Assembly (NCBI GenBank): GCA_964019335.1
Contig: OZ025674.1
Coordinates: 248,001-312,000 of the forward strand
Source of the DNA: Diplonema japonicum
Taxonomy: Eukaryota; Protista; Euglenozoa: Diplonemea
Length of the DNA: 64,000 nt
Reading direction: 5' to 3'
Shown: positions 5,700 through 53,900 of the stretch, piece after piece
Layout: every line of letters begins with the position of its first letter
How positions within the stretch are numbered: position 1 is the stretch's first letter
Notes under the pieces: generated by a model
What the model saw: only the letters and a program-made list of their open reading frames with translations
Databases searched by the model: none
Told to the model about the DNA's origin: nothing
Program-made: the position numbers and the translations under genes

Positions 5700-6457
5700 G
5701 TATCGACCGTGCCAAGAAAGTTAAATATCAGAGATCAATCGAGAGAAGTGGAAGTGAAGTGAACAGTCGAAAGTTGAAAGGTTGAAAAGTTGTTCAGAAT
5801 AGGAGTACGAAGTTATAAATTTTTTGAAGTGAACCCCTCCCCACTACATCCCACCCCGCCACCAGCCCAAACATGGACCCTTTTCCAGCCAGGGAACCTC
5901 TTAACCCCGAAACCTCTCACTTGGTACCACAAGAATGGGCTGGCGAAGAAGTACTTCCCAGGCCTAATCCCGTTTATCCTCAAATGGCTGAAAGCCCTCA
6001 AGTGGGGCAAGGACGGTGGGCAGGTGTCCAAGGCGGAACTTGCAGTCAGAAAGGATCCACATGGATGGTGAAGACCTAGCGAGCTGGGCAAGAAAAATCG
6101 GCGGAATCCTAATAGTTTTGGACAGGATTCACCAAAAAGGCACGGGGAGTCACCTGATTCCAGCAGAACCTAAGAAATCAGTACACTCTTTGCGTACCCT
6201 AGGGCTCCACAGCCATTCCATCACTGGGTACTCCACTCGACCGGTCTTCGCATCCCCGAAGGTCACCCACCCTATCCTAGAGGAACAGTTACGAACGCAT
6301 TGCATCCTCAACAACTCGCTAGTTGGTTTCACGCCCAAGCTGCTGATGAGATACCACGACGGGCCTAAGGCACTACCACGACAGAAGGGATCAAACACTA
6401 GATGAGTTGATTGTCGTTAGGCGATCCTGTCACATACTGCAGGTTCCCTCAAAGACA

Positions 6458-6491
<34 letters not shown>
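5662..6491 (+). mobile_element. SL-headed, poly(T)-tailed non-autonomous retroposon (family T, copy A)
   Basis: SL, then about 130 nt purine-rich leader, then a frameshifted ORF remnant (5790-6071 and 6016-6405) homologous to ORF 53315-53821 (WLxALxWGxxGGQVSxxELA; SVHSLRTLG; GYSxRPVFASP). A 3' hairpin lies at 6426-6443 and T32 at 6460-6491. The left flank is also a T-run. Confidence 0.75.
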
Positions 6492-6986
6492 CCATTGATA
6501 CCCGTGTGTCCGCGGTAGAAATAAAGAAAAAAAAGAATCTAAGGAGCGATAGCATTGTTTTGTGAAATTGGCAGCCAGTTACTGTGCTAGACACTGGAAT
6601 ATAAAAAAAAAAAAAAAGAAAAGTACTTTAGCATCTATTGTTCTATCCCCTAAAGAACATTTTCCCGTTCTTATTTGAGGTTAAGTGTTATGTATTTGGT
6701 TTGGACAGCTGGAATTGAAGGTTTTTAGCATTTATCAATTAGTCAACAAGCGCAATGAGTCCCCGTTCATTAGAGGTACTCGTACACAAAAAAAAAAAAA
6801 AAAAAAAAAAAAAAGAAATGTGACATGCCAATTCTGCGGCACTACTGTGACCAGGACTACTTGGCTTACAATATCCCTTCTTTTTTTTTTTTTTCCTCTT
6901 TCTTCCTGTCTATGTTCTGTTATCTGTGGTGTTGATCTTTTTTTTTTTTGTTTTCCTTTCTTTTTTTGGTATAGCCCACTCCCCAA

Positions 6987-7795
6987 GAGAGGCGCCCTTA
7001 CCGTCCTCTTCTAAAAAAAAAAAAAAAGAAATGTGCAGCGCGAATCGCTCCGTGTGTAGAGCAAAGAGTCTATTGTTTTTTTTTTAAAGGTAATAAAAGC
7101 CTTTTCAGGGAAAAAAACTTCTTCTTAAGGAAACGGCCCCAAAAATAAGGAAACCGTTTCCTTATTTTCAAAAAGAAAAGCTTGGAAACGCGTTTCCTTG
7201 CCAACATAGCTCTGGGGGGGGGGGGGGGGGGGGGTCACATGGTAGTGGTAAAATGAGTTTTTAAAAAAGGTAAAAACTTAGAAGTTAACACGGTTTGTAC
7301 CTTTTGAACGCGGCTCTTTAGGACGCCGCTACCGTTTGAACGGCAGAGTACAGTCTTGCGTTGTCGTATTTGCGAACTTTTTTTTTTTTTTTTCCCCGCT
7401 TTTGCTACGTTTTTAAGGGGCGTGTGACCCCCCCGCAGGACATGCTGGTGAGCGCGAAAATGTGAACCTTGAAATGTCTCTTTTTTTTTTTTTCACTTTT
7501 GCTTGAACAAGAGTAACAAAACATTGATTTAATGAATTGTTATTGCTAAAAAAGAGTAGTGGTGGCATTGTTGGCTTATCCTCCTACAGTTAACCCCGGC
7601 TGTGCACAAACAAAAAAAAAAAAAAAAAAGAAAAAAGAGAGAGAGAGAATTGATTTAATGAATTGTTATTCCCCCTTACGAGAGGCGCTCGTACCGTCCT
7701 CTTTTCTCCTTTTTACAATAATAATAATAAAAAAAAAAAGAATAAACGTGAAACGCGAATCGCTCCGTGTGTAGAGCAAAGAGTTTACTGTTTTT
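6987..7795. repeat. Imperfect ~95-bp direct repeat pair (6987-7080 and 7680-7795)
   Basis: Shared GAGAGGCGC...TACCGTCCTCTT and an identical 31-bp core CGCGAATCGCTCCGTGTGTAGAGCAAAGAGT at 7039-7069 and 7754-7784. Confidence 0.8.
7212..7438. mobile_element. Small MITE-like element
   Basis: Inverted termini CTG(G)nGTCACA (7212-7239) and TGTGACCCCCCCGCAG (7423-7438) around a non-coding interior. Confidence 0.5.
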
Positions 7796-8347
7796 GTTGT
7801 ATCTGTCTTCACCCCACCCGACCCCTTTTTTATCTTCCTTGTACTCCTCTCAATGGGCTGAGGGGCAGCTTCGGGGAGAAATGACACCTTCCTTCTAGTG
7901 CTGTGTTATTATTTTTATTTTTTTTCTCTTTTTCCACAAGGCTGCTTCTTCCATAACTTATCCACTGTAGTACTTGACTTTACTATCTCTTTTTTATTTT
8001 TTTTTCCCCCCCTTCTAAAAGTGAGGCGTAATTTTTTTTTTTTAACTCGGGTTTTTCTTTTGAATGCAAGACCCTCATGCAAAGAAAAAATGAAAACGGC
8101 AAAAACGAGAAATCATTCAAAATTATGGCCCATATTCTTTTTTTTTTTTAAAAATACCCCCCCCCCCCCCAGTCATGTAACTTTGGACCTAAGTATTTTT
8201 TTTTTTGGTGAAGGTAGAAAAACAAAAACAAAAAGAAAACCAGCGTTATTATTATATTATGTAGTATTTCCTTCTCTCTTCTCCCCCCTCGCTTTTTTAA
8301 AAATACAAGACACGAGGAAGGGGGGAAATAAATAAAATAAAATAAAA

Positions 8348-9391
8348 ATGTCGTCCGACTCAGTAAGTACGATGGGGTACTACCGTGAGAAGGACGTTCC
8401 AAAATGGATGGAAAGGCAGGCAAAATACCTTTCAGAGGAACAGCCGGAAAATGTGCTGAAGGGGATCCAAAGATGGGTGGAACGAGAAACCGCCATGATG
8501 CTAGAAGAAAACGATTTAAAAAAAGCAAAATTGGGCAGTGTTTTGGGGAAAGGCTCTTTCAGCAAAGTTTTGTTAGGACTGCTGGAAAGCGGTACTTATG
8601 TTGCCGTGAAACAGGTCAGCCTTAACAACGCAGATGGAGAAATAGACATCGAAGAAGAAGTTGAGAAAATACAACTTGAGGTGAAGCTGATGAAAACAGT
8701 CATCCACCCCAATATCGTCCAATGCTACGGGTCAATATTCAATCCGGAACAGCAAACCTTTGAAATCTACATGGAGTACATTGGGGGGAGAACCTTAGCA
8801 GACATGACCCGAAATTTTCACGGGCTGCCTCCTAAAGTAGTAAACGACTACAGCAGACAGATAATAACAGGTGTTGCCGTTCTGCACGAGGCCAACATAT
8901 GTCACCGAGATATCAAACCCGAAAATATTCTGGTAAATCTTCAGCAACAACTGTTGAAATTGTGCGACTTCGGGTGCTCCAAACAAATCGACAAAATTAA
9001 AAGCGGGAAGGCGAATGTATGTTGTGTTTAAAAGAAGAAGAAGAAAAAAGAATTACAGAAATCCTGTGCCACTGTAGCAGGCACGCCTTACTATATGTCT
9101 CCAGAGATTCTTACGGATGATGTAGGGTACGATGGTATGAGGGCCGACATTTGGAGCATTGGTGCTACGGTCATTCAGATGGCGACAGGTGACCTCCCCT
9201 GGCCGAAGTCTAGCAGTGACGTTGCTGCGATCTTCATGATTTCTCAAGCGCAGGGCCCTCCGACTCTCTGCCCTGACAGCTCTGAAATTGGTTCGCCTTG
9301 CTATAACTTCATCTCTTGTTGCTGTGCCATCGACCCCCACGACCGCCCCACCGCCGAAGAGCTTCTCTGCCACCCCTACATTGCACCTTAG
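8348..9391 (+). CDS. Ser/Thr protein kinase, STE11/MAP3K-like; exons 8348-9016 and 9059-9391
   Basis: GKGSFSKV, VAVK, HRDIKPEN and DFG motifs. The 42-nt intron 9017-9058 restores GTPYYMSPE and DIWSIG. Confidence 0.93.
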
Positions 9392-9450
9392 CACGATCTT
9401 TTTTATGTCTTTGTAATTTTCTTTTCTTTTTTTTTTTTTTTTTCTTTTGG

Positions 9451-9483
<33 letters not shown>

Positions 9484-9930
9484 GCTCGTTCTTTGCAACA
9501 CAAGAAAGTTAGATTTCTTTGTTTTTTTCTTTCGTTCCCTTGTCGTCCCTAGCACGCCTGCCAGGCCAGGTTCAAAAAAAAAAAAAAAAAAAAAAAAAAC
9601 ATTCTAAAATCCACTGCTGTCGCTTTTCTTCTCCCTGCCAGGCAGGGATCTTTTGTTGCCGATCAACCTTCCAGACTGTACTGTCTGTGATCTCACCTGT
9701 GTCGAATGGTGCCATCAAATCTGATGAGCTTCCCCCAATTGATTTGTTCGAGGATGCTGGCTACTTGACCCCCAGTGTTGGGCTTGAAGCATCTTGATCG
9801 TGCTGACATCGCGTCACCTCCTTGCATTTGTTCTTGTCCCATGGTCCCCTCGCCCCCGCCTTATCGCCGTGCAGGATACAAAAAAAAAAAAAAGAAGAAG
9901 AAAAAAAAAAAGTATAAAGGAAAGGATGTG

Positions 9931-12009
9931 ATGTCGCTCCACACTGGAGTGTTTTTCTGTTGTCAATGTTGTGAAGGGCTTGCAACGGTGCATTGCTGTG
10001 GGGCGTGTTGCACGGGGAGTGAGTTAGGATGGGGGGTGCAGAGGGTGCTGCATTGCTCGCACCCTTGTGTGAAAGGCGTGAAGAGGCACGACACCAGCAT
10101 AGTGAAGAAAGTGAGGGTGAAGGGGAGAAGCGTTGTGGATGAAGGGTGGGATAGCATGCCGAAAGGGGGTGTGGGGAAATGGTCCTGCTGCGGTGCTGGG
10201 AGCATGGTGGCCACATGTACCCCTGCTGCACCTTCGTCGCCACCTCCGACGCCACAGTACCCGCACTCTGTGTCACCTGTACCCACCATGCCGACCCCTG
10301 CTACTATGCCGTCAGAACAACCCCTCCTCCCTCCCATTCAAACCCAAGTACAACCAGTCCCCCAGATGCGTTCACCCACCACACTCCTCCAGTCCCAGCC
10401 CCAAGCCCTGCGCACCATCTCGCCAGTACCTTACCACGACCCTTCCTCCCTGTGCGAAGAATGTGGCCTCGACGAAGCCACCCTCTGGTGCACCAACTGC
10501 GAGGCGCTCTTCTGTGCCCTGCACTTCAAGCTGACGCATTCCTCGAAAGTGGGCTCTCGACACGTCTCGCTTGCCATTAACTACAAACCTTCGGCTTGCG
10601 AGGAGCACGCAGGGCAGCGGGCCATCCTACACTGCCTGGAGTGCAAGAAGGACGTCTGCAGGATATGCTGCTGCACACCAATGTTCGGTGTGCACAGCAA
10701 ACACAACGTGGTGACCCTCGGGGAGGCAGAGGCCAACGCGGCGCTGGAGCTGAAATCAAAGCTCGCCATTAGCAACGAAAGGAGAAACGAACTAGAGGCG
10801 GGAGTGGCGAAGGTGGGGGAGGAGAAGAGGTTCGCGAAGGAGATGATGGAGCGTGCGAGGCTCACAGTGAATAAAGAGTTTTCAAAGTTCACAGCAGCGA
10901 TATTTAGGGAAATCGAGAGGAGGAAGTCAGAGGTGCTGGGCGAGCTAGATGAGGCAAGTGTGCCCGTCATCGCCTCTCTGATGACTACCGAGGTGGCCAT
11001 GTCACGAGCCGCCCTCGCCTGCAGGGAGGCCTGCGACACCACCACAGCTGTCCTCTCGTCGCACCGTGCCCTGAAATTAAAGGACAACCTCATTACCTTG
11101 TTGGAGGGAGCGGAGGCTTCGACTGCAGCGGTCGCCACACAGCCTTCCCTCCCGAGGCTTGGTGTGAAGACCTTGTTCCCAGACGACGGCACCCTTACGC
11201 ACATTTCGGAGAAGATAGCTGGTTTCGGCAAACTGGAGATCGAGAAACACGTGCAGGGGGGGCAGGGGGACACGAGGGGAAGCACACCAAAAAAGATCGT
11301 ACACACCGTGTCTGCACAAAGGAGCGACCATGCAGACCATGAGCCCGCTCGGCAAGAATCACCAACGGGAGATAAACAAAATACACAGGACGACAAATTT
11401 GCACCTGAGCCTGAACCCGAACCTGAACCTGCAGTTGAACCTGAACCCGAGCCTGTGCTCATCCCAGAGCCCGAGCCTGTAGAGCAGGAGGTGAGTAAGG
11501 TGGTGGTTGACGAAGCGTCCTTCGAAGTTGCTGTACGAGAGGAGGCGCTGCTGAGGGATGCTGTGGCTCTGGCGGAAGGGACAGCCCGTGCATTGGTGGT
11601 GCAGTGTGCAGTGATGGAACACAAGGTGACAGTACAGAAAGAGAAGGACAGGGAACTCGTTGCTGAACCGATTGAAAGAGACACACCCTCTCCCGCTGCG
11701 CGGTCTGAGGACAGCTGCAAGAGTAGTTGCAGCCCAAAGAAAAGCCCCGAACCAGAACAAGAGCCAGAACCAGAAGAAGAAGAGGACCGAGTCCAAACCC
11801 TCTCCCCTGTCGAAGAAGATACCAAAGAAGAAGACCAAGACCAAGACCAAGACCAAGACCAAGGCACTACTCCGGAAAAGCACAGCGACCCCGAAAAGCC
11901 CAAAGAAGATAAGCCAACTGTATTGTGGTGCTCCTTTTGCAACTATGAGAATGAAACGTCGCCGTGCGAGCTGTGCGGGACGGAGTGCATTTTAAAAGAA
12001 GAGCAGTAG
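9931..12009 (+). CDS. B-box zinc finger/coiled-coil (TRIM-like) protein with PE repeats and C-terminal C4 zinc finger
   Basis: CEECxxxxATLWCTNCxxxFCxxHxxxxH and CEEHxxxxxxxHCLECxxxVCxxC B-boxes, a coiled coil, (PE)n and (DQ)n repeats, and WCSFCNYENxxxxCELC. The start codon is uncertain. Confidence 0.82.
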   Translation: MSLHTGVFFCCQCCEGLATVHCCGACCTGSELGWGVQRVLHCSHPCVKGVKRHDTSIVKKVRVKGRSVVDEGWDSMPKGGVGKWSCCGAGSMVATCTPAAPSSPPPTPQYPHSVSPVPTMPTPATMPSEQPLLPPIQTQVQPVPQMRSPTTLLQSQPQALRTISPVPYHDPSSLCEECGLDEATLWCTNCEALFCALHFKLTHSSKVGSRHVSLAINYKPSACEEHAGQRAILHCLECKKDVCRICCCTPMFGVHSKHNVVTLGEAEANAALELKSKLAISNERRNELEAGVAKVGEEKRFAKEMMERARLTVNKEFSKFTAAIFREIERRKSEVLGELDEASVPVIASLMTTEVAMSRAALACREACDTTTAVLSSHRALKLKDNLITLLEGAEASTAAVATQPSLPRLGVKTLFPDDGTLTHISEKIAGFGKLEIEKHVQGGQGDTRGSTPKKIVHTVSAQRSDHADHEPARQESPTGDKQNTQDDKFAPEPEPEPEPAVEPEPEPVLIPEPEPVEQEVSKVVVDEASFEVAVREEALLRDAVALAEGTARALVVQCAVMEHKVTVQKEKDRELVAEPIERDTPSPAARSEDSCKSSCSPKKSPEPEQEPEPEEEEDRVQTLSPVEEDTKEEDQDQDQDQDQGTTPEKHSDPEKPKEDKPTVLWCSFCNYENETSPCELCGTECILKEEQ

Positions 12010-12177
12010 CCCCACCCTTTTCTTTTTCATATATTGTGAAAAGCCGTTTAGATATGTTAGACAGTGTCCCTCCCTGCAACTTTTATGATTATGCATCAAG
12101 AATGAGGGAAGGGAACAAAACAAAACAAAACAAAATAGAAAAAAAGGTGAAGGGGACTTAAGAAAAGTTTAAGGAAA

Positions 12178-12495
12178 ATGGCACGCAGCGTAAATGCAGC
12201 AGATTGTTTGACAGTAGAGGGGGAGGAGAAGTGGGTTCTTTCACCGGCGGAGACAGGGGGGTTGTTGAAGGTGCAGTTTCCTGAGGGGAAACAGGTTCCC
12301 AGCAAGATCGAGCTGGCGAGGTGGACGAGCGACAAACTTGAAGGCGTTCAGGTTCCTGGAATCCCTGACGACACAATCCTGACAGCCCCTGCGGACCTCA
12401 CGGGAGGAAAACTCATGCTACAGCTGAGCAACGAAGCTCGCCAAGCGCTTGGCTCAGGCAGTGTACTGACGCTGATCGATTACTACCGGTGTTAG
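12178..12495 (+). CDS. Small hypothetical protein
   Basis: GC-balanced 105-aa ORF with natural composition between low-complexity spacers; no recognised motif. Confidence 0.65.
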   Translation: MARSVNAADCLTVEGEEKWVLSPAETGGLLKVQFPEGKQVPSKIELARWTSDKLEGVQVPGIPDDTILTAPADLTGGKLMLQLSNEARQALGSGSVLTLIDYYRC

Positions 12496-12685
12496 GAGTT
12501 TTCTCCTCTTTTTTTTTTTTTTTTTTTTTTTTGTTTGTATCTCCAGAACAGGGACAGAGTGGTGTTTCTTTTTTTTTTTTTTTTTTTTTGTTTCTCCCTC
12601 GTGAAACTAACGTTTTTTTTTTTTTAACTCGCCTTCTTCAACGGAAGTTCAAAAAAAAAGAGCCCCCCCCCCCATCCAGAATGAC

Positions 12686-13612
12686 ATGACAGAAAAGCTT
12701 GAAGGATGGAAGGAAGTGGCGATCATCCTGATCTACATCAGCCTCTACTCCGCAGGGGGCTTGCTGACAAAGCTGTCCAAGGGCGATGGTGACTACACAT
12801 ATAACCCGGTGGGAGTCACATTGGTGGTAAGCTGCCTGAAGCTCATCATCTCACTAGCGATGCTGGCCAATCAAGGATGGCCAGCAAACCTCGGCCTGGC
12901 GGGGTCCTGGAGGTTTGCTTACCCAGCAGTGGTGTACGTGATCGACGACAATCTGCAATTTGCTGTTTTGTACTATATCACACCGGGGGAGGCGGCGTTG
13001 TTCTTCAGCTTCAAGGTGCTGAGCACGGCAATGGCATCGAAGATCATGTTGAACAGAGAAATCAGTTCATTGCAATGGTCGGCTCTTATGCTGTTAACAC
13101 TTGGACTGGGGACTTCAAAGATAGGCGGGCAACACTTTCAAGGATTTAACCTAGGCCACGTTCTTGTTGTAGTTGTGTCTACCATAGGCTCGACGGGCGA
13201 TGTCTATAACGAGAAACTGCTTAAAACCGATACCGAAGCTTCAATTCACCTCCAAAACATCAAACTGTACACCTTCAGTGTACTCCTCAATGGGTTGGGC
13301 TACGCTGTGTACGAGAAGCAGGGAACGCTGAACAGCGCAACCTACGGTTGGAATGTGTTTGTTGTAATGCTTGTTTTTGTGAACTCTTTCAACGGGATTG
13401 CCGTTTCCGTCATCTTCAAGTTCCTCGATAATATTGTGAAGGTGCAGGCGGCGGCCGGTGGCATGGTCCTCACCGTCCTTCTCTCCTCTCTGATCTTTGG
13501 AAGAGAACCTTCTCTTGGTTTCTACCTCGGTGTGGGCATTGTCTTCAACGCTCTTTACATCTTCAACTACAAGCACAAACCCATCACATCCGACCCACAA
13601 ATAGAAGCCTGA
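12686..13612 (+). CDS. Nucleotide-sugar transporter (SLC35A-like)
   Basis: About 10 TM helices with AYPAVVYVIDDNLQF, KVLSTA, QWSALMLLTLG, VYNEKLLK, QNIKLY and KFLDNIVK motifs. Confidence 0.9.
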   Translation: MTEKLEGWKEVAIILIYISLYSAGGLLTKLSKGDGDYTYNPVGVTLVVSCLKLIISLAMLANQGWPANLGLAGSWRFAYPAVVYVIDDNLQFAVLYYITPGEAALFFSFKVLSTAMASKIMLNREISSLQWSALMLLTLGLGTSKIGGQHFQGFNLGHVLVVVVSTIGSTGDVYNEKLLKTDTEASIHLQNIKLYTFSVLLNGLGYAVYEKQGTLNSATYGWNVFVVMLVFVNSFNGIAVSVIFKFLDNIVKVQAAAGGMVLTVLLSSLIFGREPSLGFYLGVGIVFNALYIFNYKHKPITSDPQIEA

Positions 13613-13613
13613 G

Positions 13614-24241: not shown

Positions 24242-25045
24242 GGGGTTTCCGAGACTGGGGTGTTGGAAGGGGGGGGGTCAAAAAAGAGACAGGTTTTCTA
24301 ACCTGGGGGTATAATGTTGCCCCGTACTCCTTAGGCATTCTTTGGAAAGAAGATCAAATGTACAGTAAAAATCTTTGGTGGGGGCCCGCTTTAAGAACAG
24401 GATCCCCCTCTCCAATTTCTCCCTTTATGTCAAAAAAAAACCCCCCCCCCAGGGCATTGAAAAAAGAAGTTATAATGAAGAAAACAAAATTATAAGAAAA
24501 TAAAATCAGTCTATTCCCCTCCGTGAAAACTTTTCAGTGCCTTGGGTCAACAGGTTGAAAAGGGAAAATGTGAAGGAGAGAGAAAAAAAGAAGAAGAATA
24601 CAAAAAGTTTTGATATAAAACATATTACCCCCCCCCCCCCCCTCTCTCTTCATTTCTCAACACAGATGTGCGATTCTCATTTATCTATTCATTTATTTCC
24701 CTCCGTTTTTTTTTTTTTTTTTTTTTTTTCAAAGAAAAGAGAATAGGTAAGACATCCACCATAATTTCGTTTCTTTATATCTTGCCGTGTCCTAAATTCC
24801 AAAAAAAAAAAAGTTTGAAAAGTTATAAAAAAAAAAAAAGAAGAAGCAGAAAGGAGTGAGCTGGGAAAGAGAAAGAAAAAAAAAAAGAGAATCAAAAAGA
24901 GGCATTTTTTTTTTGTTCATCTTTTTTTTTTCCTCTTCTCCACCACGTTTTCCTTCACGATAAGGTTTAAAAAAAAAAAAAAGAAAATTCACCACACACA
25001 CTGATATCCCTCTCTCTCTCTGTCCCCCATTTTCTTTTTTTTTTT

Positions 25046-25111
25046 GGCGATCCTGTCACATACTGCAGGTTCCCTTCAAAGACATCTTTTTTTTTTTTTT
25101 TTTTTTTTTTT
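25046..25111 (+). mobile_element. 41-bp 3'-terminal fragment of retroposon family T (copy C) inside a poly(T) tract
   Basis: GGCGATCCTGTCACATACTGCAGGTTCCCTTCAAAGACATC is identical to 6420-6459 except for one extra T. T-runs flank both sides. Confidence 0.85.
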
Positions 25112-25168: not shown

Positions 25169-26668
25169 ATGAAAATAAACCAGAGACTTGCGTCCCCCCT
25201 TTTGTACTTGGGGGGTGCTATACTAGTAACAACGGTGATAAGCAGTGCCATCGAAGGAAGTGCGGGATTTGCCATTGCAGCTGGGCTATGGGCCTGCTGT
25301 GCCGCTGTTACTGAGTACGGACGCCGGGACGTAGCAGTAGGTCTCGGACTCCTAGGGACAGCCTTGATGGACATTGACAGCATATGCCTTGGTGAAGGCA
25401 GAACTTGGATGGCTTCCCTCGTTCTACTCAACACGGGTTTTGTGTGCGACATTCGTCTTGCCACAGGGCTTACGTTCTTCTACCTGTTCCTGACGACCGT
25501 GATCCACGGTACAGTGGACATCAGCCTCACCTCCCTCTCTACCATGTCATGCGCCGCCACCCGTACCATTCACGTTAACAGTGCAATACGTGTTTTCCTC
25601 ATCCAGCTCTCCGCCCTGATCTCCACGTATCTGTGCATTGTTTCTTCCAAGCGTAGGTGCGCTGCCCGCACGCAAGACCTCGAGAACTGTATTGAGACAG
25701 TGACGACGATCAGCGGCCTTGTCACCGACTTCGACACACGTCTTGCTGAACAGTATCTTGAAAGCGATTTGTGTGCCTCGCCTCTTGAGGTGAAGGTCGC
25801 CATGCTGAGCATCGTCAACACAATGCACAAGTACGAACCGTTCCTGACCCCGCTTCCTGGGGATCACCGCGCGGACTGGGTGGACGTGCCCCCTACCACG
25901 GGTGCTGAGGTGGTAGCATCGCTCGCCGTGGTGAACATGGTCAGCAGCATGCGGCTGCTGACAAGAGGATGGGACGGCTTCGCGAGACAGTTCAGTTGGG
26001 TAGTGGGCACTGTGCAGGACGTGGCGCGCATCAGGAACGGCGTGCACGAGGTAGTGGGGGACAAGATCATGATAGGGTTCAACGTCATCAACGAGACAAA
26101 GGAACACTGCAAAACTGCGATGGAAGCAGCAGTAGACATAGTACGGCTTCTGGGACTGAACAACCCAAACAACGTGGCCACCATAGCTGTCGTGTCGGGT
26201 AAGTGCCGTGCAGGGCTAGTAGGAACCGAGTCCTACAAGAAGCTGTGCATTGTAGGCGTGGCACCCACGCTGCTATTTGCTCTTGATCGGTACCTTCGAC
26301 GCCACGGTGTGACGCTGGGATGCGACAAGTCTGTCTTTGCAGAAGTCTTTGACAGTTATGAAATGCACTGCATTACACAGTCTTTGGCATTCACGAGGAA
26401 GAACTTTGGTGAGTTTGTGACTTCTGTGTGGGAAGTCTCCCTCGCAGCGATTGAGGACACAGGGCTTGTCCCGCCTGGCGACCCCCGTGACTGGCGGTAC
26501 GACCAGAAACCTCGCAGCAAGCCAAGCTTTCTTCTCGCACCCAGGCATGGATCGCCCAAGAATGACAGCCCGCTGCCTTCCGTCGAAAGCAAGGCTAGCT
26601 TCACAGCTAACCTCGTTGATGAGCTGGAAGACGTGGAAGAGGTTGAAAAGGTGTACTTCGAATTCTGA
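25169..26668 (+). CDS. Multi-TM protein with degenerate class III nucleotide-cyclase domain
   Basis: Hydrophobic N-terminal half, then VVGDKIMIGF, IAVVSGKCRAGLVGT and KLCIVG cyclase-like motifs. The first metal-binding Asp appears replaced (AVVNM). Confidence 0.7.
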   Translation: MKINQRLASPLLYLGGAILVTTVISSAIEGSAGFAIAAGLWACCAAVTEYGRRDVAVGLGLLGTALMDIDSICLGEGRTWMASLVLLNTGFVCDIRLATGLTFFYLFLTTVIHGTVDISLTSLSTMSCAATRTIHVNSAIRVFLIQLSALISTYLCIVSSKRRCAARTQDLENCIETVTTISGLVTDFDTRLAEQYLESDLCASPLEVKVAMLSIVNTMHKYEPFLTPLPGDHRADWVDVPPTTGAEVVASLAVVNMVSSMRLLTRGWDGFARQFSWVVGTVQDVARIRNGVHEVVGDKIMIGFNVINETKEHCKTAMEAAVDIVRLLGLNNPNNVATIAVVSGKCRAGLVGTESYKKLCIVGVAPTLLFALDRYLRRHGVTLGCDKSVFAEVFDSYEMHCITQSLAFTRKNFGEFVTSVWEVSLAAIEDTGLVPPGDPRDWRYDQKPRSKPSFLLAPRHGSPKNDSPLPSVESKASFTANLVDELEDVEEVEKVYFEF

Positions 26669-44913: not shown

Positions 44914-46627
44914 ATGGGCAGACATGATGAAGAGAACTCTGGGTTGGTAAACTCGCACGATGGTCTGGTGGATGAGGGGTCCACGGTCATGTGGCTGGCG
45001 CTGCTGGCAACGTCGTGTGCTACTTTCACATTCGGGTTCACCTTGGGGTTCACGTCGCCTGTCTTCACACCGGATGGGAACACCACGTGTTTCGACCCAC
45101 CGTGCAGCTCGCAGTTCGAGCACTACCTAGACAGAGAGATGAACCTCACCGCTGATCAGACCACTTGGTTCTCCTCCGTAGTGAACCTCGGTGCTGGAGG
45201 CTTCGCCATCTTCGGTGGCAATCCCGTCGACCGCTTCGGTAAGAAATGGGGCATGGTCGCAGCGCACCTCCTCTTCCTCACCGGGTGGGCCCTCCTCCTC
45301 TCTGCAAAGTCCGTTCCCGAAGACGACTCGAACACCAGCACCGTCGCACAGCTGTACATGTCGCGTGTCATACAAGGCTTTGGGATTGGTATGGTGTGCT
45401 GCTCCGTCGGTAACTATCAGGTGTGAAACAAAAAAAAAAAAGAAAAGAAAAAAAAAAAAACAAAAAAAAAAAAATCTAGACTGAGATCTGTACCTTGAAA
45501 CTCCGGGGTGTCTTTGGGAGCTGCTTCCAGATCGCAATCGTGCTCGGCATCTTCACTGTCTACGGTTTGGGGCTTAAGATCCAGTATGCCAGTGGGGTGT
45601 TCGAAGAATGAATTTTCCTTTCTCTCCAGTTGGCGCACTCTATGCATGGTTGTAATGTCCGTGGAAGGGGTGGGTCTGTTCCTGACGTTCTTCCTCCCGG
45701 AGTCCCCCGTGTGGCTCCTTGGCAAGGGCAGGAGGGAAGACGCCGAGCTGGCTTTGATGTCCTTCAGGACCAAAGACAGCAGCATCGAGGTATCCCCACC
45801 ACCACCACCACCACCCCACCCCCTTTAGAAAATCATGGCCAACATGGCAGCAGTTGTTGACAAGAACAGCGATAAGAAGGAAGGCGGGTTCAAGGACCTA
45901 CTTGTAGCACCGAGATGTATGAAAACCCCTTAAACAACAACAACACAAGAATAACAACAGTGAAGGCACTGTGCATCGGTGTGGGGCTGATGTTTGTTCA
46001 GCAGCTTTCGGGCATCAACGCTGTGATGTTCTACGCAAACAAGATCCTTGGGAACGTGTGGTCGGACCCTGACACTGTGAACAACTATGCACTGGGAGCA
46101 CAGGGAATGCAGTTGGCAGTGACCGTCGCGGTCTCCCCCTTCATGGACAAGGCGGGGAGGCGGCCCTTGCTGATCGCAGCGTGCGTTGGAATGGTCATCT
46201 CGTGCGGTGTTATGAACGCGTTCTTCTTCTACTCGGACACTACGAAACCCGCCTTTGCGGTTATAGGCTTCTACGCGTACATTGCTTCCTTTGCTATGGG
46301 GATGGGTGCCATTCCTTGGTTCATCATGGGTGAGATCTTCCACCCTGAAGTGAAGGGTATCTCTAGTTCTGTAGCGACTGCTTTCAACTGGTCATTGTCG
46401 TTTGCAGTCACGAAGACCATTCAAAACCTCGTCGACGCCTTTTCTGATGATGAGAATGTGGGCATGGGATGGGTCTTTACTCTCTATGGGTCTGTTTGTT
46501 TCGTTGGTATTGCCTTTGTCTTCTTCTGCATTCCGGAGACAAAGGGCAAGCCTTATGAACAGGTCGAGGCAGAACTCCTGGGGAACACGGGTTACGTTGC
46601 TGTCGAAGCTGACGACGATGAGTACTA

Positions 46628-46628
<1 letters not shown>
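44914..46628 (+). CDS. MFS sugar porter (GLUT8/Tret1-like); exons 44914-45420, 45480-45583, 45630-45789, 45829-45916, 45961-46628
   Basis: GFTLGFTSP, DRFGKK, EI..LRG, PESPxWL, QQLSGINAVMFY, DKAGRR, GAIPW and PETKG motifs. Four introns restore the frame. Confidence 0.93.
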
Positions 46629-46678
<50 letters not shown>

Positions 46679-47210
46679 TTAAGAAAAAGTTGAAACGCTG
46701 AATTACGAATTTTTTTTAAAGAAAATATATTCAATATATTATACAAAAGAAAGAAGAAGAAACAAACAAAAAAAAAAAGTTGAAATGCTGATTTATGAAA
46801 TACTCGAGGGAAGGAGCAATTCCGGAGAGAAAAAAAAGAAGAAAAAAAAAGGGGGCGTGAAAAAAACTAAAAAAATAAAAAAAAGGTTGCATGCCGCCAT
46901 TTGTTGTTTCTTCCCTAAAACACTTCGTTTTTTTTTTTTTTTTTTTTTTTTTTTTGCATCACTCCCCCTCCCCTCTGTCTCGGTTCCCTTGCTATTCATT
47001 TATCTGCGGTGCGTGCATTTCAGAAAGAAAAAAAGGTTAGGGAGAAAAAAAAAAAGGAACCCCTTCCGTCATTGCCAAGTAAGTAGGTTAGTGGGAGGGA
47101 GAAATATCTGTAAAAAGATTGAGCGTTATGTGTCACAAACCGGCTTGAATGAACTTTGTCTAATGTTCCCCCTTTTTTTTTTTTTTTTTTTTTTTTTCTT
47201 TTTTTTTTTT

Positions 47211-47969
47211 TTTTATTTCACTCTTCGTCATTTTCTTCACTCACTAGGGGCCTCATTATTTAGGGGCCTCATTATTTAGGGGCCTCATTATTCAACGCGA
47301 AATGGCCATTATTTAACGCGAAACGGCCATTATTTAACGCGAAATCGCCATTATTTAACTAGTTAAATAATTTTTTTATTTCACTCTTCAGAAATTACTT
47401 CACGCACTGGGGGGCCCATTACTTCACGCTAAATCTCATTACTTCACGGTGAAATAATGGCCTGTTTTCCGTGAAGTAATAGGGGGTTTCCGTTAAATAA
47501 TATGCCTCGGTAGGCCAATTTTTGCCTCGGTTCGGTTCCCAGTGGGGCTACTTTTTCCTCTCAGTTTGCTATTTCCCCCCAGGTTCAGCTCAATTGGCCA
47601 ACTTTTGCCTCGGCTCAGTTCCAAGTTGGACTACTTTTTCCTCCCAATTTGCCCACTTTTGGCTAGGCCTTGTTCCCAGTTTCTGTGGGTAACTCTTCTA
47701 TGGGTAAGGGTAACTTAGTCAGCTTACCCAAGCACCCCAAAAGACTTCAAAATACCGAAGCAGCAGAAAAAAAGGAGCCAGCGTAGGTATGGGAAGGCCT
47801 GATTAGAGATGGTGACAGTGGCAATGCCAGCGACAGCGGCAGCTCTTAGTCAACAAAAGGAGGAAAAACAACTTGTATTGTAACCTTTGTAACCCCTCTC
47901 TTGTTGTACCCCTTGTCACCCTGTTGTGCCCCTCGTGGTGAAGTAATTTCAGAGTGTCGTGAAATAAAA
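47211..47969. repeat. Composite minisatellite/inverted-repeat element
   Basis: 3x16-bp TAGGGGCCTCATTATT (47245-47292), 3x21-bp AACGCGAAAxxGCCATTATT (47293-47355) and a perfect 22-bp palindrome (47350-47371). TTATTTCAC..GAAATTACTTCAC (47377-47403) is inverted at 47938-47969. Confidence 0.75.
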
Positions 47970-47973
47970 CCAC

Positions 47974-48102
47974 TTACCTACCGCCAAGTAATGCTTTACC
48001 GACCTCGAGGTAACGGTAAATACCATCTCGGGCCCTGCGGGCCCTCGACGGTAAAATGCGGAACCTCGAGGTAACGGTAAAGTCATTACTTGTTGGCAGT
48101 AA
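47974..48102. mobile_element. Tiny MITE-like element (~129 bp)
   Basis: Termini TTACCTACCGCCAAGTAATGCTTTACCG and reverse-complement TTACTGCCAACAAGTAATGACTTTACCG. Internal direct repeat ACCTCGAGGTAACGGTAAA occurs twice. Confidence 0.65.
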
Positions 48103-48230
48103 ATAGCTATTTTTTTTTTTTTTTTCCTTCAAAAAATTCGCATCACGTCCGCCAACCCCTACTTTCAGGCGGCTCCGCGTTGGGGGGCGGGGAGGGGGAG
48201 AACGGGAGAAAAAAAAAAGAAAAAAAAAAA

Positions 48231-48593
48231 ATGAGTTCAAACAACAATGACTCGTATGACAATGAAGCGAATCAACCCGCAGCACAATCCAGCGTTGCTG
48301 ACGAGGTACCCTTGATGCACAGCAGCATGAACCCTCCCCCCATGGGGCTCAACCCGTTCATGACTCTGGAACCGTTAAAAAAGAGCTTCGCGAGCTCCAC
48401 GGTAGTGGCTGTTCTGCTAGCCCATTGGGACCCTGTGAGGGGCCCGTCACTAACGATGATATTGAAAGAAGAAGCTTGCGCACTGGAAGAAGATGAAATT
48501 GAATTCGTAGGACGTTTCGCGCTTCTATCAGCAGTACCACAGGGTGAGGTGTCGGGGATAACCTACACGTCCCTACCTCAGCTTAACGTCGGT
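48231..48593 (+). CDS. Longin/uDENN-like protein, C9orf72-like N-terminus (truncated by assembly gap)
   Basis: VVAVLLAHWDPVRGP resembles the C9orf72/longin first-strand motif (AYWDNILGP). The ORF runs into Ns. Confidence 0.55.
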
Positions 48594-48793
48594 NNNNNNN
48601 NNNNNNNNNNNNNNNNNNNNNNNNNNNNNNNNNNNNNNNNNNNNNNNNNNNNNNNNNNNNNNNNNNNNNNNNNNNNNNNNNNNNNNNNNNNNNNNNNNNN
48701 NNNNNNNNNNNNNNNNNNNNNNNNNNNNNNNNNNNNNNNNNNNNNNNNNNNNNNNNNNNNNNNNNNNNNNNNNNNNNNNNNNNNNNNNNNNNN
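48594..48793. other. Assembly gap (200 N)
   Basis: Run of n characters. Confidence 1.
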
Positions 48794-49300
48794 CCCTCCC
48801 CTTCCACCCCCTTTTTTTTTTCCATCGAAACAGCTTGAGGAGGAAAAAGAAAAAGGGGGGGGGGGGTGTTATTTTTTTGAGGTCCCGTGTTTAATGGGGA
48901 GGGAAGTATAATAAATCAGTTGTGACCGAGAGTGCCTTTTTTTTTTTTTTTTTGTGAACACTTGTACAAATATTTTTTTAAGAAGAAAAAAAGAGAGAGA
49001 AAAAGAAGAGAAAGAAGCGAGCTTTTAAAAAAAGAAAATCGGTGTGTCATTTACCTAATTGTAACTATTTGTACAAACGTTTTGGGAAACGGGGAAAAAA
49101 AAAAAAATCAACAGACACAAAAAAAAGAAGGAGGGAAAAAAAAGAATTAAGCGAAAGGCCTTTTTTTATGACTAGCTGGTGGTGGCACGCAAACCTTTTT
49201 TCCCCCCCCCTCCTTCTCTTTTCTTCTTGAAGTCCCTTTTAAACCATATCTCTTCCAAACAGGGGCTTGTCTCTAATTTAAAAAAGAAAAAAAAAAAAGT

Positions 49301-50281
49301 ATGTCTGCAGTAGATAAAACTGCTTGCGCGAAATGTGAGAAGCGCCAGGGGGTGTTCTGGGTGCCAGAGGAGAATGCACCGTGGTGTGCAGTATGCAGTA
49401 AGAAGAAGAAAAATAGGGAAGAGCTGAAGATTGAAAAACCCGTAAACCGAACGGTAACAGAAAAGAAGCGAGCAGTGCACACAAGAGAAGCATATGAATC
49501 AGCAAAGGCTCGAGGCGGGTCCCGAGAGGGGTGGGTAGAAGTAGGGGGGATCATAGGCTTCGCGAAGCTGGGCAGCACCCCCAACCCGAAGGTGCTCAGC
49601 ATCTTCCCAAACTTCAAACACGGAAGTAGAACAGACGGCCTTGGCCTCCCATCCCTCTCCCCGAAGAGCATCGGGCCCATACCTACCAACCAGCCGGCTC
49701 CCTTCCACATGTGCTTGAACCTCGAGAACTTCCACCAAGGCTCAAAATACTTCGGCGACTGCGAAAATCTCCTAACATACATGCAAAGAACACACCAAAG
49801 CGAAACCCTTCCAACCCGCAGCTCGGTAGGGGAAACCCCGGAAGAGTACCTTGCCACCAAAAAAGATACGTTTCTGGACAGTGAACCACACAGGCACAAG
49901 GCTGGGATGCGCGGGAAGGTACCCACATGCTCTGTGTGGCAGGACAGCAACGGCGAGGTGCACTTCATCGATTACGTGCAGTCCAGACAGTTCTACTGTG
50001 TTTACTATGAGAGGTCGTTGACAGGTGTTTACAACGAACTCGGGGAGCGGCACAGACAGGCAGCTGCTGACTATCAGCACCTCTTGGACCTCCAACAGGA
50101 TTCTGTGGACATGAAAATCTGGGGATATGATGGGTACCCCATTGTGCCGACTGCAGCTGCAGTACGTGCGCAGTATCTTGACACCTCGCTGCCTTTCGGG
50201 CACGAAGCGGTTCTCTTCGCAATGTTGGCACTGCCCCCTGCTCAGTGGCCGTGGAAGGAATTCACCACGTTTACATTTTAG
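49301..50281 (+). CDS. Conserved hypothetical protein, paralog 1 (N-terminal C4 zinc ribbon; intronless)
   Basis: CAKC...CAVC followed by LSPKSIGP, NLENFHQGSK, YVQSRQFYCVYYE, GYD and PFGHE shared with paralog 2. Confidence 0.85.
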   Translation: MSAVDKTACAKCEKRQGVFWVPEENAPWCAVCSKKKKNREELKIEKPVNRTVTEKKRAVHTREAYESAKARGGSREGWVEVGGIIGFAKLGSTPNPKVLSIFPNFKHGSRTDGLGLPSLSPKSIGPIPTNQPAPFHMCLNLENFHQGSKYFGDCENLLTYMQRTHQSETLPTRSSVGETPEEYLATKKDTFLDSEPHRHKAGMRGKVPTCSVWQDSNGEVHFIDYVQSRQFYCVYYERSLTGVYNELGERHRQAAADYQHLLDLQQDSVDMKIWGYDGYPIVPTAAAVRAQYLDTSLPFGHEAVLFAMLALPPAQWPWKEFTTFTF

Positions 50282-50408
50282 TCTCTTTCAACTTCCTCCT
50301 GGATGGCTTGCAAGGCACCTAGCCCACTGCCTTTTTACGAGCCTTCCGTTTTCTTTTTTTCTTTATTTTCTTTTTCTTTTTACCAATTCCCTGCCCCCCT
50401 AGGTTGTA

Positions 50409-51281
50409 ATGCCCATGAAAGGGAAAGTGTTGGATAAAGCTGCGACGAAGTTAGCAGCTGCTGAAAAGAAAAGAGCTGCAGCCACACAGTTGGCTTTTGA
50501 TGCAGCGAAGGGAAGGGCTGGTTCGCGGCTGGGAAAGGTACAGTGCGGGGGTTTAAAAGGCAGGTTTGGAGCCCTCAAAGTTGCATCTGACCCTGAGGTG
50601 CTCAGCATCTTCCCAAACTTCAAACACGGAAGTAGAACAGACGGCCTTGGCCTCCCATCCCTCTCCCCGAAGAGCATCGGGCCCATACCTACCAACCAGC
50701 CGGCTCCTTTTGAAATGTGTCAGAACCTCGAGAATTTCCACCAAGGGTCGAAATACTTCGGGGATTGCAACAAGCTCTCCCAGCACATGTGCAAGGCACC
50801 GCGAGCGGTCCCGCCGTGTAAAAAAGACAGAGAAACGCCTGAGAAGTTTCTTGAAACGAAAAAAAACATGTTTCTGGACAGTGAACCACACAGGCACAAG
50901 GCTGGGATGCGCGGGAAGGTACCCACATGCTCTGTGTGGCAGGACAGCAACGGCGAGGTGCACTTCATCGATTACGTGCAGTCCAGACAGTTCTACTGTG
51001 TTTACTATGAGAGGTCGTTGACAGGTGTTTACAACGAACTCGGGGAGCGGCACAGACAGGCAGCTGCTGACTATCAGCACCTCTTGGACCTCCAACAGGA
51101 TTCTGTGGACATGAAAATCTGGGGATATGATGGGTACCCCATTGTGCCGACTGCAGCTGCAGTACGTGCGCAGTATCTTGACACCTCGCTGCCTTTCGGG
51201 CACGAAGCGGTTCTCTTCGCAATGTTGGCACTGCCCCCTGCTCAGTGGCCGTGGAAGGAATTCACCACGTTTATGTTTTGA
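50409..51281 (+). CDS. Conserved hypothetical protein, paralog 2 (intronless)
   Basis: Tandem paralog of 49301-50281 with a different N-terminus. Confidence 0.85.
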   Translation: MPMKGKVLDKAATKLAAAEKKRAAATQLAFDAAKGRAGSRLGKVQCGGLKGRFGALKVASDPEVLSIFPNFKHGSRTDGLGLPSLSPKSIGPIPTNQPAPFEMCQNLENFHQGSKYFGDCNKLSQHMCKAPRAVPPCKKDRETPEKFLETKKNMFLDSEPHRHKAGMRGKVPTCSVWQDSNGEVHFIDYVQSRQFYCVYYERSLTGVYNELGERHRQAAADYQHLLDLQQDSVDMKIWGYDGYPIVPTAAAVRAQYLDTSLPFGHEAVLFAMLALPPAQWPWKEFTTFMF

Positions 51282-51515
51282 TCCTTCTTTTTTTTCTTCT
51301 TCTCTTCGCCTGCGGCTCTCGCGCAGAGTCTGCATGTGACATCGCCTTATTCTTCCGTCTCCCGCTCTACATTTCCTCACGTTCCAACACGTTAATGCGT
51401 GTTGCAAATCGTATTCTTATGGTTGCTTTCTCTTCTTTTTATTATCCTCCATAGGCGTAAGTGCGAACATGTGCTGTTGAATAGTATACGCAAAACGCCT
51501 GCTGTTTTTTGTAAG

Positions 51516-53296
51516 ATGAAGTTGGGTCTTCAGCTTCTAGTTGCACTGCAGATATTACAGGTTGCAGTGGCGTCTAGTATGGTGACGCTGAATGGTGATC
51601 TGGCAGTATGTTTTTTTTTGTTTTTTTATGTTCCTGTGAAACATAATAACACAGAAAACCATTGAAAACGAGATTAATATCAGAAGGTGCCAACACCAAA
51701 GCGGGAAGCTGGTTTGGAGCGACACGCTGGCAAGCAAAGTGGCTATGCAGAGTAAGGTGGCACAAATGTATGACGGCCCCCTTTCAATCAAATTAATATC
51801 AAAAAAAAAAAAAAAGGTGTTCCAGCGGAGCAACGATGCCCACGCCACAATACGGGGAGAATTATGGGGCGTTTTCTGGGAATTTCCCGTCGTCAGCAAA
51901 AAATCGGTACAGTGCGCTGTCTGGCATGATAGACAAGTGGTTCGCTGAGAGTTCGAGCTATATTTTTTACGACAGGAGTTTGAATTCTGCGTCAACGCGA
52001 ATGTTCCAGCAGATGATCTGGAACGCAACCGATGAGGTGGGGTGCGCGGTATGCAACGGGATGAGCTCGTGGAGCATGGCCTGTTGGTTCACCGAACCTT
52101 ACTCCGCGATGACCTCCAAGCAGCAGGCGAACATCTTCGACGAAATCACCTGCAATATCATCTGGGTCCCTGCCACGAATGCCCCAAACACAACGGTCCC
52201 TGACACTCTGTCACCGCCAACTGCCGAACCCACGGCCGAGCCTACAAGTGAACCAACTGCGGGACCCACTACGACACCTTCAAACGAAACTGATACCCCT
52301 CTCACGGATGCCCCCAACACCACTGTCCCAGACACACTCGTTCCCAACACAACAAGTCCAGAAACCCTGTCGCCCGACACGGCAACACCGACAAAGATGG
52401 TTAAGAATGACACGCTCGTCCCTGACACATTGTCCCCTACCAACGCACCTGTGGCGTATAAAGGGTACTGGAAGAGTGTGGGGTTCTATTTCCGTGCAAC
52501 ATGGCCACGCGACGATGTAGACACGTGGGTGGCGAAGCTTGTGAAGACGTTGCAGCTTTCTTGGAGCGTCCAGCCGCGTGGCGTACACGCGGTGTACATC
52601 TGTCCTTTGGTGGATGGCAACAAGCCTGTTGGCGACGAGGCGGAACGGCGATGCATGGTGATGAAGAGCACGAGCAGAACGGCTGTGCTTCTGGGCGAAA
52701 CAATGCAAGAATGGAAGAGCTTGGAGAACAACCCGGACGTAGGTGTGTACTCTGAGATAGTCGTTGAGGACGAGGAGAACATCGTAGACTCCAAAGTGAA
52801 CGACATGACACAAGCACTGGGTGCGTCTATGAAGCAAGAAGCACCTTTGTACAATATGGACCATTTAAGACCAGGGTCGGAGTTTCTTAATATCCAAGCG
52901 ATGGGGTTTGACAATGGTGCGCCTGCAGTGGTGGTGCAAGGGGGTACCCCATCAGGGAGATGGTCCGCAAAGCAATCTCAGGACTGGGCTCCCCCTGAAG
53001 GGGACAAGTCCAGCGTGGTGTGGTGGCTGTGGTTGATCCTCGGTTTTTGTGTTTTCTTCACGTTCGCTGCAATGACCTCCTTCCTCGTCATCAAGAGACA
53101 GCGAGCCACAGGGACTCTTTCAGCCGTCACCGTCTCTGAGTTCTACCGAACAATGCCCGAAGGTTTCCTTCCCGGCCCTATCCCTGAGGAGCACTATTGT
53201 TACAACGATGATCTTACCTCGAGATCTTCTGTTGAGCTTGACAGCGCTCGCAGCTTTAATATGAACTTGGGGATACAACCGATAGGCAGAATATGA
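51516..53296 (+). CDS. CAP/SCP/PR-1 domain type I membrane protein; exons 51516-51605, 51655-51767, 51817-53296
   Basis: Signal peptide; spliced NxxRCQH..LVWSDTLA, GEN, WFAE and FQQMIWNATDEVGCA; PT-rich stalk; TM VWWLWLILGFCVFFTFAAM. Confidence 0.85.
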
Positions 53297-53344
53297 GAAA
53301 CTTTTGAAATTCACATGAGTTGTAGGTGTTTTCTTTTTTTTTTT

Positions 53345-53900
53345 CAACAGTGCCTCCCACGGCTCATCCCGCACGTCATCCGATGGCTCTCTGCCCTTCA
53401 CTGGGGCACGACAGGTGGACAGGTCTCCAGGCTTGAGCTGGCCATAGACTTCATTGCCACGGTGGGACTCTCACCTTGTGAAGAGGGTGAGGACATCCAA
53501 GTGAGCGCGCGTGTAATAGGCCGGGTGATAACGGCACTAGAACGCATCCACACCAGTAAGGGCATAGCGCCCCTCATCCCAGCTGCGTCAGTAGTTTCTG
53601 TCCACTCCCTGCGCACGTTGGGTTACTACAACAGCTCCGTAAGGGGCTACTCCTCTAGACCGGTATTCGCCTCCCCGGTGACCCGCCACATCCTTGAGAA
53701 ACAACTGTACAACTATTGTGTCCTTACCAACTCGGTTGAGGGTTTTATACCTAAGGTACCGAGGAGGGTGAACGAGGGGCCGAAGGCCACACCACAGCAG
53801 AAAGGTTCGATCAAGAGATAGATTGAGACTCTTCAGGCGTCCTGCCACATACCGCAGGTACCCTTAAATGTCTCTTTTTTTTTTTTTTTTTTTTTTTTTT
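53345..53900 (+). mobile_element. 5'-truncated retroposon, family T (copy B, divergent subfamily), poly(T)-tailed
   Basis: The open C-terminal ORF fragment is homologous to 5790-6405. Hairpin CCTGC-CACATACC-GCAGG lies at 53841-53858 and T26 at 53875-53900. A T-run also precedes the 5' junction. Confidence 0.75.

Follow-up and report, generated by a model that had tools for sequence, protein, structure and literature searches.

A retrotransposon family with a poly(T) 3' end and a spliced-leader head in Diplonema japonicum: a candidate for an inverted priming step

Why do three related sequences, all on one strand, end in a long run of T, and why does another run of T stand directly before each of them? 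The question is raised by a 64,000-nucleotide stretch of the genome of Diplonema japonicum (GenBank assembly GCA_964019335.1, contig OZ025674.1, positions 248,001 to 312,000, forward strand; the whole stretch is called the window below, and positions are counted from its first letter), in which copies A, B and C of one repeat family were found, all on the + strand, with tails of T32, T25 and T26, respectively, and with T runs of 11–16 directly on their 5' side. The answer reached is a long interspersed element (LINE) of the apurinic/apyrimidinic (AP) endonuclease type with a conserved 3' stem-loop, a homopolymer end of inverted polarity and a spliced-leader (SL) head, whose priming step would be inverted as well. 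An earlier, sequence-only reading had picked out the three + copies by their variable 5' ends, common 3' end, tails of T25–32 and upstream T runs; when the coordinates were re-read, all of this was borne out.

The copies in the window and the family

The copies and their parts are the following; the subfamilies named A-type and C-type and the open reading frames (ORFs) are described below the list.

5646–5661, +: T16 run, left part of the target tract, abutting copy A
5662–5699, +: spliced-leader head of copy A, 38 nt, identical with the SL exon of the tandem SL RNA gene of the genome minus the first base of the exon
5700–5882, +: copy A, A-type 5' untranslated region (UTR) and first ORF1 codons (ATG at 5873), as far as the internal deletion junction
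5883–6401, +: copy A, remnant of the C-terminal coding part of ORF2, 86% identity to the A-type reference, with a frame break and a TAG stop (6399–6401)
6409–6459, +: copy A, predicted three-tier 3' stem-loop, inner stem at 6426–6443 with an 8-nt loop; element end at 6459
6460–6491, +: T32 tail or tract of copy A
25035–25045, +: T11 run abutting the 5' side of copy B
25046–25086, +: copy B, a 41-bp A-type stub made of the stem-loop module only, start GGCG, aligning to the last 42 nt of the A-type reference
25087–25111, +: T25 tail of copy B, the end of which lies 57 nt before the ATG of the ORF at 25169–26668
53334–53344, +: T11 run abutting the 5' side of copy C
53345–53874, +: copy C, 530 bp, a young C-type copy, 5'-truncated, 100% identity to the C-type reference
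within copy C, +: the last 158 codons of ORF2 (stop at 53819–53821) and the 3' stem-loop (inner hairpin at 53841–53858)
53875–53900, +: T26 tail of copy C

In all three copies an 18-nt hairpin core (5 paired bases on each side, 8-nt loop) is followed by 15–17 nt and then by the pure T run. A search of the window for the hairpin motif (up to 2 mismatches) returned exactly three sites, those of copies A, B and C; 100 shuffles of the window gave a mean of 0 matches, and none of them reached three. The T run followed by CAACAG, which the sequence-only reading had placed at the opening of copy B, actually opens the third copy (53345). Truncation at the 5' end, likewise claimed there, is true of the family, in which 5' extents vary against a single 3' end, and is not true of copy A, which carries the leader head, the 5' UTR and an internal deletion (near 5882/5883) that fuses the ORF1 start to the last 577 bp of the element. 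This deletion junction is unique in the genome, no other copy spanning query positions 220/221, and a non-autonomous subfamily represented by copy A was ruled out on that ground. Two other leader-headed copies with internal deletions at different breakpoints were seen, namely L098 (G000:C7:48686-48964; ~150 bp, in which the leader and 14 nt are joined to the element's 3'-terminal ~95 nt) and G000:C15:625736-627261; both suggest template jumps within the RNA during reverse transcription.

The genome assembly (62,535,345 bases, 132 contigs) was searched with the same hairpin motif; 1043 matches were obtained (464 forward, 579 reverse; reversed control, 0), spread over all large contigs. The last 158 codons of copy C gave 151 scored genome matches, some of them inside open frames of 1457–1561 residues. 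For an unbiased sample, the first 100 motif matches in genome order were taken, 30 as 3-kb loci and 70 as 279-bp stretches. Eight long loci fall into two subfamilies, the C-type (as at 53345) and the A-type (as at 5662 and 25046). The C-type copies are ~99.9% identical to one another, and the subfamily is thus young; the A-type comprises both very young and older lines. Of 69 non-redundant copies, 67 align to the references as far as the element 3' end; the shortest copy has 39 bp and the longest 6351 bp, every copy reaching the common 3' end, and 13 A-type and 14 C-type copies were counted as 5'-complete.

Most copies are extreme 5' truncations: 76 of the 96 T-tailed copies in the sample (49 C-type, 27 A-type) are stubs of about 39–46 bp, a stub being defined as a copy for which the preceding 20 nt differ from the element by more than 4 edits, and 20 are longer. 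Stubs start with AGGCG, CAGGCG or GGCG; these bases follow TT in the element, and the 5' border of a stub is therefore ambiguous by one to three T's.

A full element measures 6200 bp in the C-type (with a truncated leader) and 6351 bp in the A-type and consists, in this order, of the spliced-leader head, the 5' UTR, ORF1, ORF2, the three-tier stem-loop (~60 nt) and the T run. ORF1 (~540 residues) is Q-rich; a Pfam search of ORF1 and of the 158-residue C-terminal piece of ORF2 gave no match. In seven of the eight long loci ORF2 is an open frame of 1457–1460 residues, in the same frame as ORF1 past one stop codon; the likely start Met of ORF2 lies ~60 codons beyond this single stop codon (L061–L067). 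The protein opens with a short leader ending in the motif GDIHPNPGP, which we take to be 2A-like, followed by an AP-type endonuclease N-terminal of the reverse transcriptase (Pfam Exo_endo_phos, 3.1e-5, residues 98–321, 24.3 bits against a curated cut-off of 24.5), the reverse transcriptase itself (RVT_1, 5.2e-22, residues 687–929) and a C-terminal region in which only Cys/His positions are conserved. The best matches of the reverse transcriptase to solved structures are human L1 ORF2p and R2 proteins (~1e-13). At E values up to 1e-5 nine homologues were found (six EukProt transcriptome proteins, one protein of D. papillatum and two ENA proteins), diplonemid proteins with PF00078 and PF03372, the latter precomputed on eight of the nine; the closest are 45–47% identical.

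From RVT_1 and Exo_endo_phos, with the reverse transcriptase upstream and on the same strand as the T run, it follows that a genuine AP-endonuclease LINE is at hand, and the retroelement family of the earlier reading is upheld by both domains, found upstream in the same frame and strand. Judged by these sequence features, the family is a young and abundant LINE of the diplonemid. A metagenome scan for relatives gave 79 loci of 19–40% identity, several of these distant relatives carrying A runs and none carrying the hairpin or a T run of at least 12 at a plausible 3' end; they are too distant for the T tail of other diplonemids to be judged.

The 3' end: stem-loop, T run and target tract

Folding of 91–96 nt around the element end predicts the same three-tier architecture in both subfamilies: an inner stem of 5 bp that closes an 8-nt loop; a further pair of short stems beginning AGG:CCU; and an outer stem, in which the last 5–6 nt of the element pair with a stretch ~45 nt upstream. 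The C-type fold has −22.4 kcal/mol (z = −5.0; as stable a fold in 0 of 200 shuffles), the A-type fold −16.2 kcal/mol (z = −2.4; 4 of 200). The letters of the outer stem differ and pair in both cases (C-type GAGAC/GUCUC, A-type GAUUGUC/GACAUC), and beside the inner stem a U-A pair in the C-type stands against an A-U pair in the A-type; covariation was judged from two independent folds, the pairing columns being shifted between the subfamilies by a 1-nt difference in length. Loop, stems and flanks are nearly invariant across 15 diverse copies, and the stem-loop is kept between subfamilies whose ORF2 C-termini share only ~55% identity; the C-G versus U-G pair, given earlier as the mark of a hairpin conserved across divergent subfamilies, was confirmed in the copy alignment. 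The start of a stub falls exactly on the foot of the AGG:CCU stem, and a stub thus comprises the complete inner structure, a 10-nt linker and the T run. Recognition of this stem-loop by the ORF2 protein would be in line with other LINEs (see below). A search of Rfam with window positions 5500–6600 gave sub-threshold matches only, in which the T run pairs with a nearby A run, and no known RNA family fits.

Beyond the hairpin, a run of at least four T's starts within 10–24 nt in 96 of the 100 sampled matches. The four exceptions are L138 (T11 earlier, internal deletion), L114 (T3), L126 (a C run, then T's) and L074 (A10); in L074 (G000:C4:436150-436428), the sole sampled copy with an A run, the hairpin is followed by TTTCCTTC and then by A10. 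Across the genome, exact C-type ends stand before T4 or more in 362 cases and before a non-T base, always C, in seven. An L1-like poly(A) tail is thus not found: one match in 100 has an A run, and none of the seven non-T bases is A. That the sense strand ends in T and not in A, as had been proposed from the window, therefore holds for the family at large (96 T against 1 A in the sample; 362 T against 7 C at C-type ends).

Nearly all copies, long and short, have a T run or a T-rich tract as their 5' flank. The longest open frame outside the element lies on the strand of the element in 28 of the 30 3-kb loci (binomial p = 9e-7); along the contigs the strand changes seven times in 89 neighbouring pairs of the 100 matches, each time from − to + (hand count). 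This orientation is not due to the placement of homopolymers, since the window, read on the sense strand and with the copies set aside, has 57 T runs and 55 A runs of at least 10. The T-rich 5' flanks and the orientation bear out insertion into T or pyrimidine tracts in the sense of gene clusters. The long open frames of the window are all on the + strand and resemble a polycistronic gene cluster; an ORF listed at 48090–48911 runs through the letters of an assembly N gap and is not to be counted as a gene. The gap itself (48594–48793), which has copy B on one side and copy C on the other, both at a distance of over 4.5 kb, has no bearing on the finding. The T25 tail of copy B is probably now part of the acceptor tract of the ORF at 25169–26668.

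Another dispersed repeat, ending in CACACTGAAAYTTTATCGA and a T run, lies directly upstream of four copies (L067:60-140, L009, L001, L152); T tails of other families are thus used as landing sites, with head-to-tail trains as the result. Pure T runs of great length (T35–T47) and A runs (A26–A38) were also noted in intergenic DNA of the window next to which no element is recognisable, at positions including 4651, 13618, 22802 and 46631; some stand right after host stop codons, such as the T47 at 46631.

Is the 3' T run then part of the element, or is it the target? In the sample of 100 matches the median pure 3' T run is 18 in the C-type (n = 58) and 8 in the A-type (n = 38; Mann–Whitney p = 1.2e-6); genome-wide, a run of at least T20 stands after 138 of 362 ends of the C-type and 18 of 200 of the A-type (Fisher p = 9e-15). 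On the 5' side of stubs, by contrast, both subfamilies show a median T run of 6 (n = 44 and 24; p = 0.6). Age does not explain the difference, because near-identical young A-type copies have short tails (T7, T8, T18) and young C-type copies long ones (14–42 in 18 copies of at least 98.9% identity, with a cluster at 25–27). Tail length thus appears to behave as a heritable property of the subfamily, as would be expected if a U-run in the template RNA were copied. A U-run of the template that pairs with the nicked A-strand is, as read from the DNA copies, the probable source of the tail, and would correspond to the oligo(U) tail of the RNA proposed in the sequence-only reading.

Several observations weigh against this reading. 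Long pure T runs are common in places where no element stands (16 runs of T20 or more, beside 11 of A20 or more, in the window outside the copies), and long tails by themselves therefore prove nothing. In A-type stubs the two flanks sum to 6 + 8 = 14, the length-weighted median of background T runs of at least 8, which makes the A-type compatible with a plain split of the tract and no added tail; in C-type stubs the sum is 6 + 17, an excess of ~9. In impure tracts the T run beside the element exceeds the remaining runs in length, at its 5' side as well as at its 3' side, and a comparison that gives this enrichment on both sides does not separate tail from target. No duplicated non-T sequence was seen at 48 inspected junction pairs and no empty insertion site was found, so that T's of the target and T's of the element are indistinguishable copy by copy. 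The covariation of the stem-loop was seen across two lineages only, and the endonuclease score in Pfam lies just under its cut-off.

Several of these points would suit a LINE with no tail at all, whose RNA would stop with the final base of the stem-loop region and whose reverse transcriptase starts unpaired, like that of R2, the flanking T's being a split tract or a T-only duplication. Such an element would explain why T runs stand on both sides of nearly every copy and are enriched on both sides in impure tracts, and it agrees with the frequency of long T runs in the background and with the length-weighted background value reached by A-type stub flanks. It is nevertheless the less likely reading: the 3' T run differs strongly by subfamily and the 5' run does not, for which two related endonucleases would have to differ in the length of the tract chosen and agree in the distance of the cut from its left edge; an exact 3' processing step would be needed besides. 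Any transcript of a DNA copy already has a U-run able to pair with an A-strand primer.

The 5' end: spliced leader and junctions

The 38-nt leader opens copy A in the window and the A-type loci L067 and L068, and in L064 it lacks its first base. The tandem SL RNA gene of the genome has the same exon with one more A at the start (L139, G000:C59:512230-512800, −; a 346-bp repeat with a 39-nt exon, near a contig end; the intron begins with GTACCC, and a terminal hairpin is followed by a T run). Since the SL intron differs from the element sequence past the leader, the head is derived from trans-splicing of the element RNA; capture of the leader from an SL RNA gene was rejected on the same difference. 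The link to trans-splicing that the sequence-only reading had drawn gains direct genomic support from the spliced leader at the 5' end of full-length copies.

Among 17 further 5' ends, all four of the A-type have the full leader; of the 13 C-type ends, two have the full leader, nine a T run and the last 13 nt of the leader, which follow TTT within it, and two begin elsewhere in the leader. In the A-type locus L155 the leader is followed by a 16-nt relict part-leader (the leader nt after an internal AG) and then by the element body, the mark that would be expected from re-trans-splicing of a DNA-encoded leader. In the window (5691–5724) and in L067 the leader end CTTTATTGG was seen by eye to be complementary to CCAATAAAG, ~11 nt downstream in the A-type 5' UTR; the C-type has a shorter match, and such pairing would put the 3' end of the leader in a hairpin. 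A different leader-headed repeat family was also met (L140 and L141; G000:C3:991840-992560 and C35:587730-587900), in which the leader is followed by GTCGTTCGTG and, in L141, two leaders stand in tandem, 15 nt apart. Many of the 154 matches to leader + GT lie near contig ends.

The heads and tails might also be those of an autonomous transcription unit resembling an SL RNA gene, whose transcription would begin at leader position 1 and terminate in the T-tract, giving a U-ended RNA. Transcription of kinetoplastid SL RNA ends in a T-tract, and the layout of the element (SL exon + GT at the start, hairpin + T run at the end) is that of the SL RNA gene of this genome. The sequence past the leader is, however, not SL intron; the leader and relict 16-nt part-leader of L155 are what trans-splicing would be expected to leave; most C-type copies lack the first 23–26 nt of the leader; and an upstream promoter would not travel with the RNA, all of which makes such a unit very improbable.

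Shorter still than the stubs is a class consisting of the last 11 nt of the element between T runs (53 matches, 0 in the control), which starts just after TT; in L076 one of these copies lies directly upstream of a stub. The three 5' hot spots, i.e., the stub start (76 of 96), the last-11-nt class (53) and the truncated C-type leader (9 of 13), have in common a TT or TTT just upstream in the element and a T-tract as flank. Judged by these junctions, the 5' end would be set where terminal A's of the cDNA pair with the T-tract of the target upstream, and this proposed pairing would account for the hot spots after TT or TTT. Such a microhomology rule does not explain the excess at the stub site over later TT sites; a footprint of protein on the stem-loop and cleavage of the RNA there would be alternatives.

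An origin of the 42-bp module and its T run in a host sequence or a separate small repeat, just upstream of which a site-specific LINE inserts, is suggested by the 76 of 96 motif matches that are the module alone between T runs, but can hardly be credited, as A-type bodies always go with A-type modules and C-type bodies with C-type modules (a C subfamily of 89% identity having its own variant), the outer stem pairs the last 5–6 nt of the module with upstream sequence inside the element, the ultrashort stubs of the last 11 nt occur 53 times against 0 in the control, and the left flank of the modules has nothing conserved except T's.

Proposed cycle, related elements and meaning

With the tail read as the copy of a template U-run, the following cycle is proposed. 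The element would be transcribed together with the polycistron and trans-spliced at its 5' end. Like that of stringent-type LINEs, the ORF2 protein would recognise the 3' stem-loop; the oligo(dA) 3' end that is set free would pair with the U-run past the stem-loop and prime cDNA synthesis, the mirror image of the T-primer of L1 on its poly(A) template. The 5' junction would form where the growing cDNA ends in A's able to pair with the upstream T-tract of the target. Each insertion would then have a T-tract upstream, a possible acceptor signal for the element, and one downstream, for the next gene and as the next U-run.

A wider form of this proposal is put forward tentatively: the whole cycle of the LINE may be built on trans-splicing signals, with the leader as 5' end, a DNA-encoded U-tract (polypyrimidine tract) in place of poly(A), priming on the A-strand of the host and an acceptor tract rebuilt on both sides; the template would perhaps be a piece of pre-mRNA ending just past the U-tract, and the ~42-nt stubs would then be copies of intergenic by-products. 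A niche of this kind may minimise harm to the host, as the sequence-only reading had it; of the copies in the window it is copy B that backs this, its tail ending 57 nt before the ATG of the ORF at 25169–26668.

The nearest precedent is EhLINE1/EhSINE1 of Entamoeba histolytica. In the Entamoeba elements the endonuclease is restriction-enzyme-like and lies on the C-terminal side of the reverse transcriptase, whereas it is AP-type and N-terminal here; the present family differs also in a long, pure homopolymer tail (up to T47 in the sample), the spliced-leader head, the near-absolute sense orientation in polycistrons and the predominance of 42-bp stubs. What is shared is a T-rich 3' tail and a T-rich target (PMC1635306). 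For stringent-type LINEs (eel UnaL2, zebrafish ZfL2) a need of the own ORF2 protein for the conserved 3' stem-loop is described in PMC1636434 and PMC4176376. The likeness here is a 3' stem-loop module far more conserved than the coding region. Elements of the UnaL2/ZfL2 type end in short microsatellite repeats, in contrast to the poly(T) end found here.

Target-primed reverse transcription (TPRT) of the L1 type takes place with a poly(A) RNA on an oligo(dT) primer and leaves 5' truncations and microhomology at the 5' junction. Compared with L1, the polarity of the homopolymer is mirrored, and the run would be encoded in the DNA and remade at each insertion and not added after transcription. 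The AP-type endonuclease with reverse transcriptase, extensive 5' truncation, a homopolymer tail of the sequence complementary to that of the nicked strand and the 5' microhomology are common to both (TPRT as outlined in PMC3956500).

Dinoflagellate retrogenes are a further likeness: their DNA copies have the spliced leader at the start, with relict part-leaders left by successive rounds (PMC6050394 and PMC12014239), as found here in L155. There, host genes are copied passively; here, the leader heads the retrotransposon itself. The poly(T)-tailed short interspersed elements (SINEs) of plants have a Pol III origin. They are short and non-autonomous, in contrast to the autonomous LINE described here; SINE tails may be poly(A), poly(T) or another simple sequence (PMC8825457). 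SLACS, CZAR and CRE sit at a fixed site in SL RNA genes, whereas the present copies are dispersed and have the leader as a 5' end of their own. The textbook 3' end of a LINE is poly(A) or a microsatellite, and an autonomous LINE with a poly(T) tail was not found in the literature searches. The family is not described in the part of the D. japonicum genome note that was available (PMC13598402; 0 occurrences of 'retrotransposon' and 'transposable'), nor in the main text of the D. papillatum genome paper, the repeat supplement of which may contain further information. Contributions of the present analysis are the predominance of stubs, the coincidence of the stub start with the foot of the stem-loop, the class of ultrashort copies, the dependence of tail length on subfamily, the outer stem and the relict leader.

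If the proposed reading is true, a U-tract on an oligo(dA) primer means that the homopolymer pairing step of TPRT can be inverted, and the family shows how a retrotransposon lives inside polycistronic, trans-spliced units and leaves them unbroken. From its leader-headed copies it can be read directly which RNAs served as templates of reverse transcription. Standing at splice-acceptor tracts in about 1000 copies, the family may influence gene expression signals in a group of very abundant ocean protists, and the lifestyle of the element seems fitted to a trans-splicing genome.

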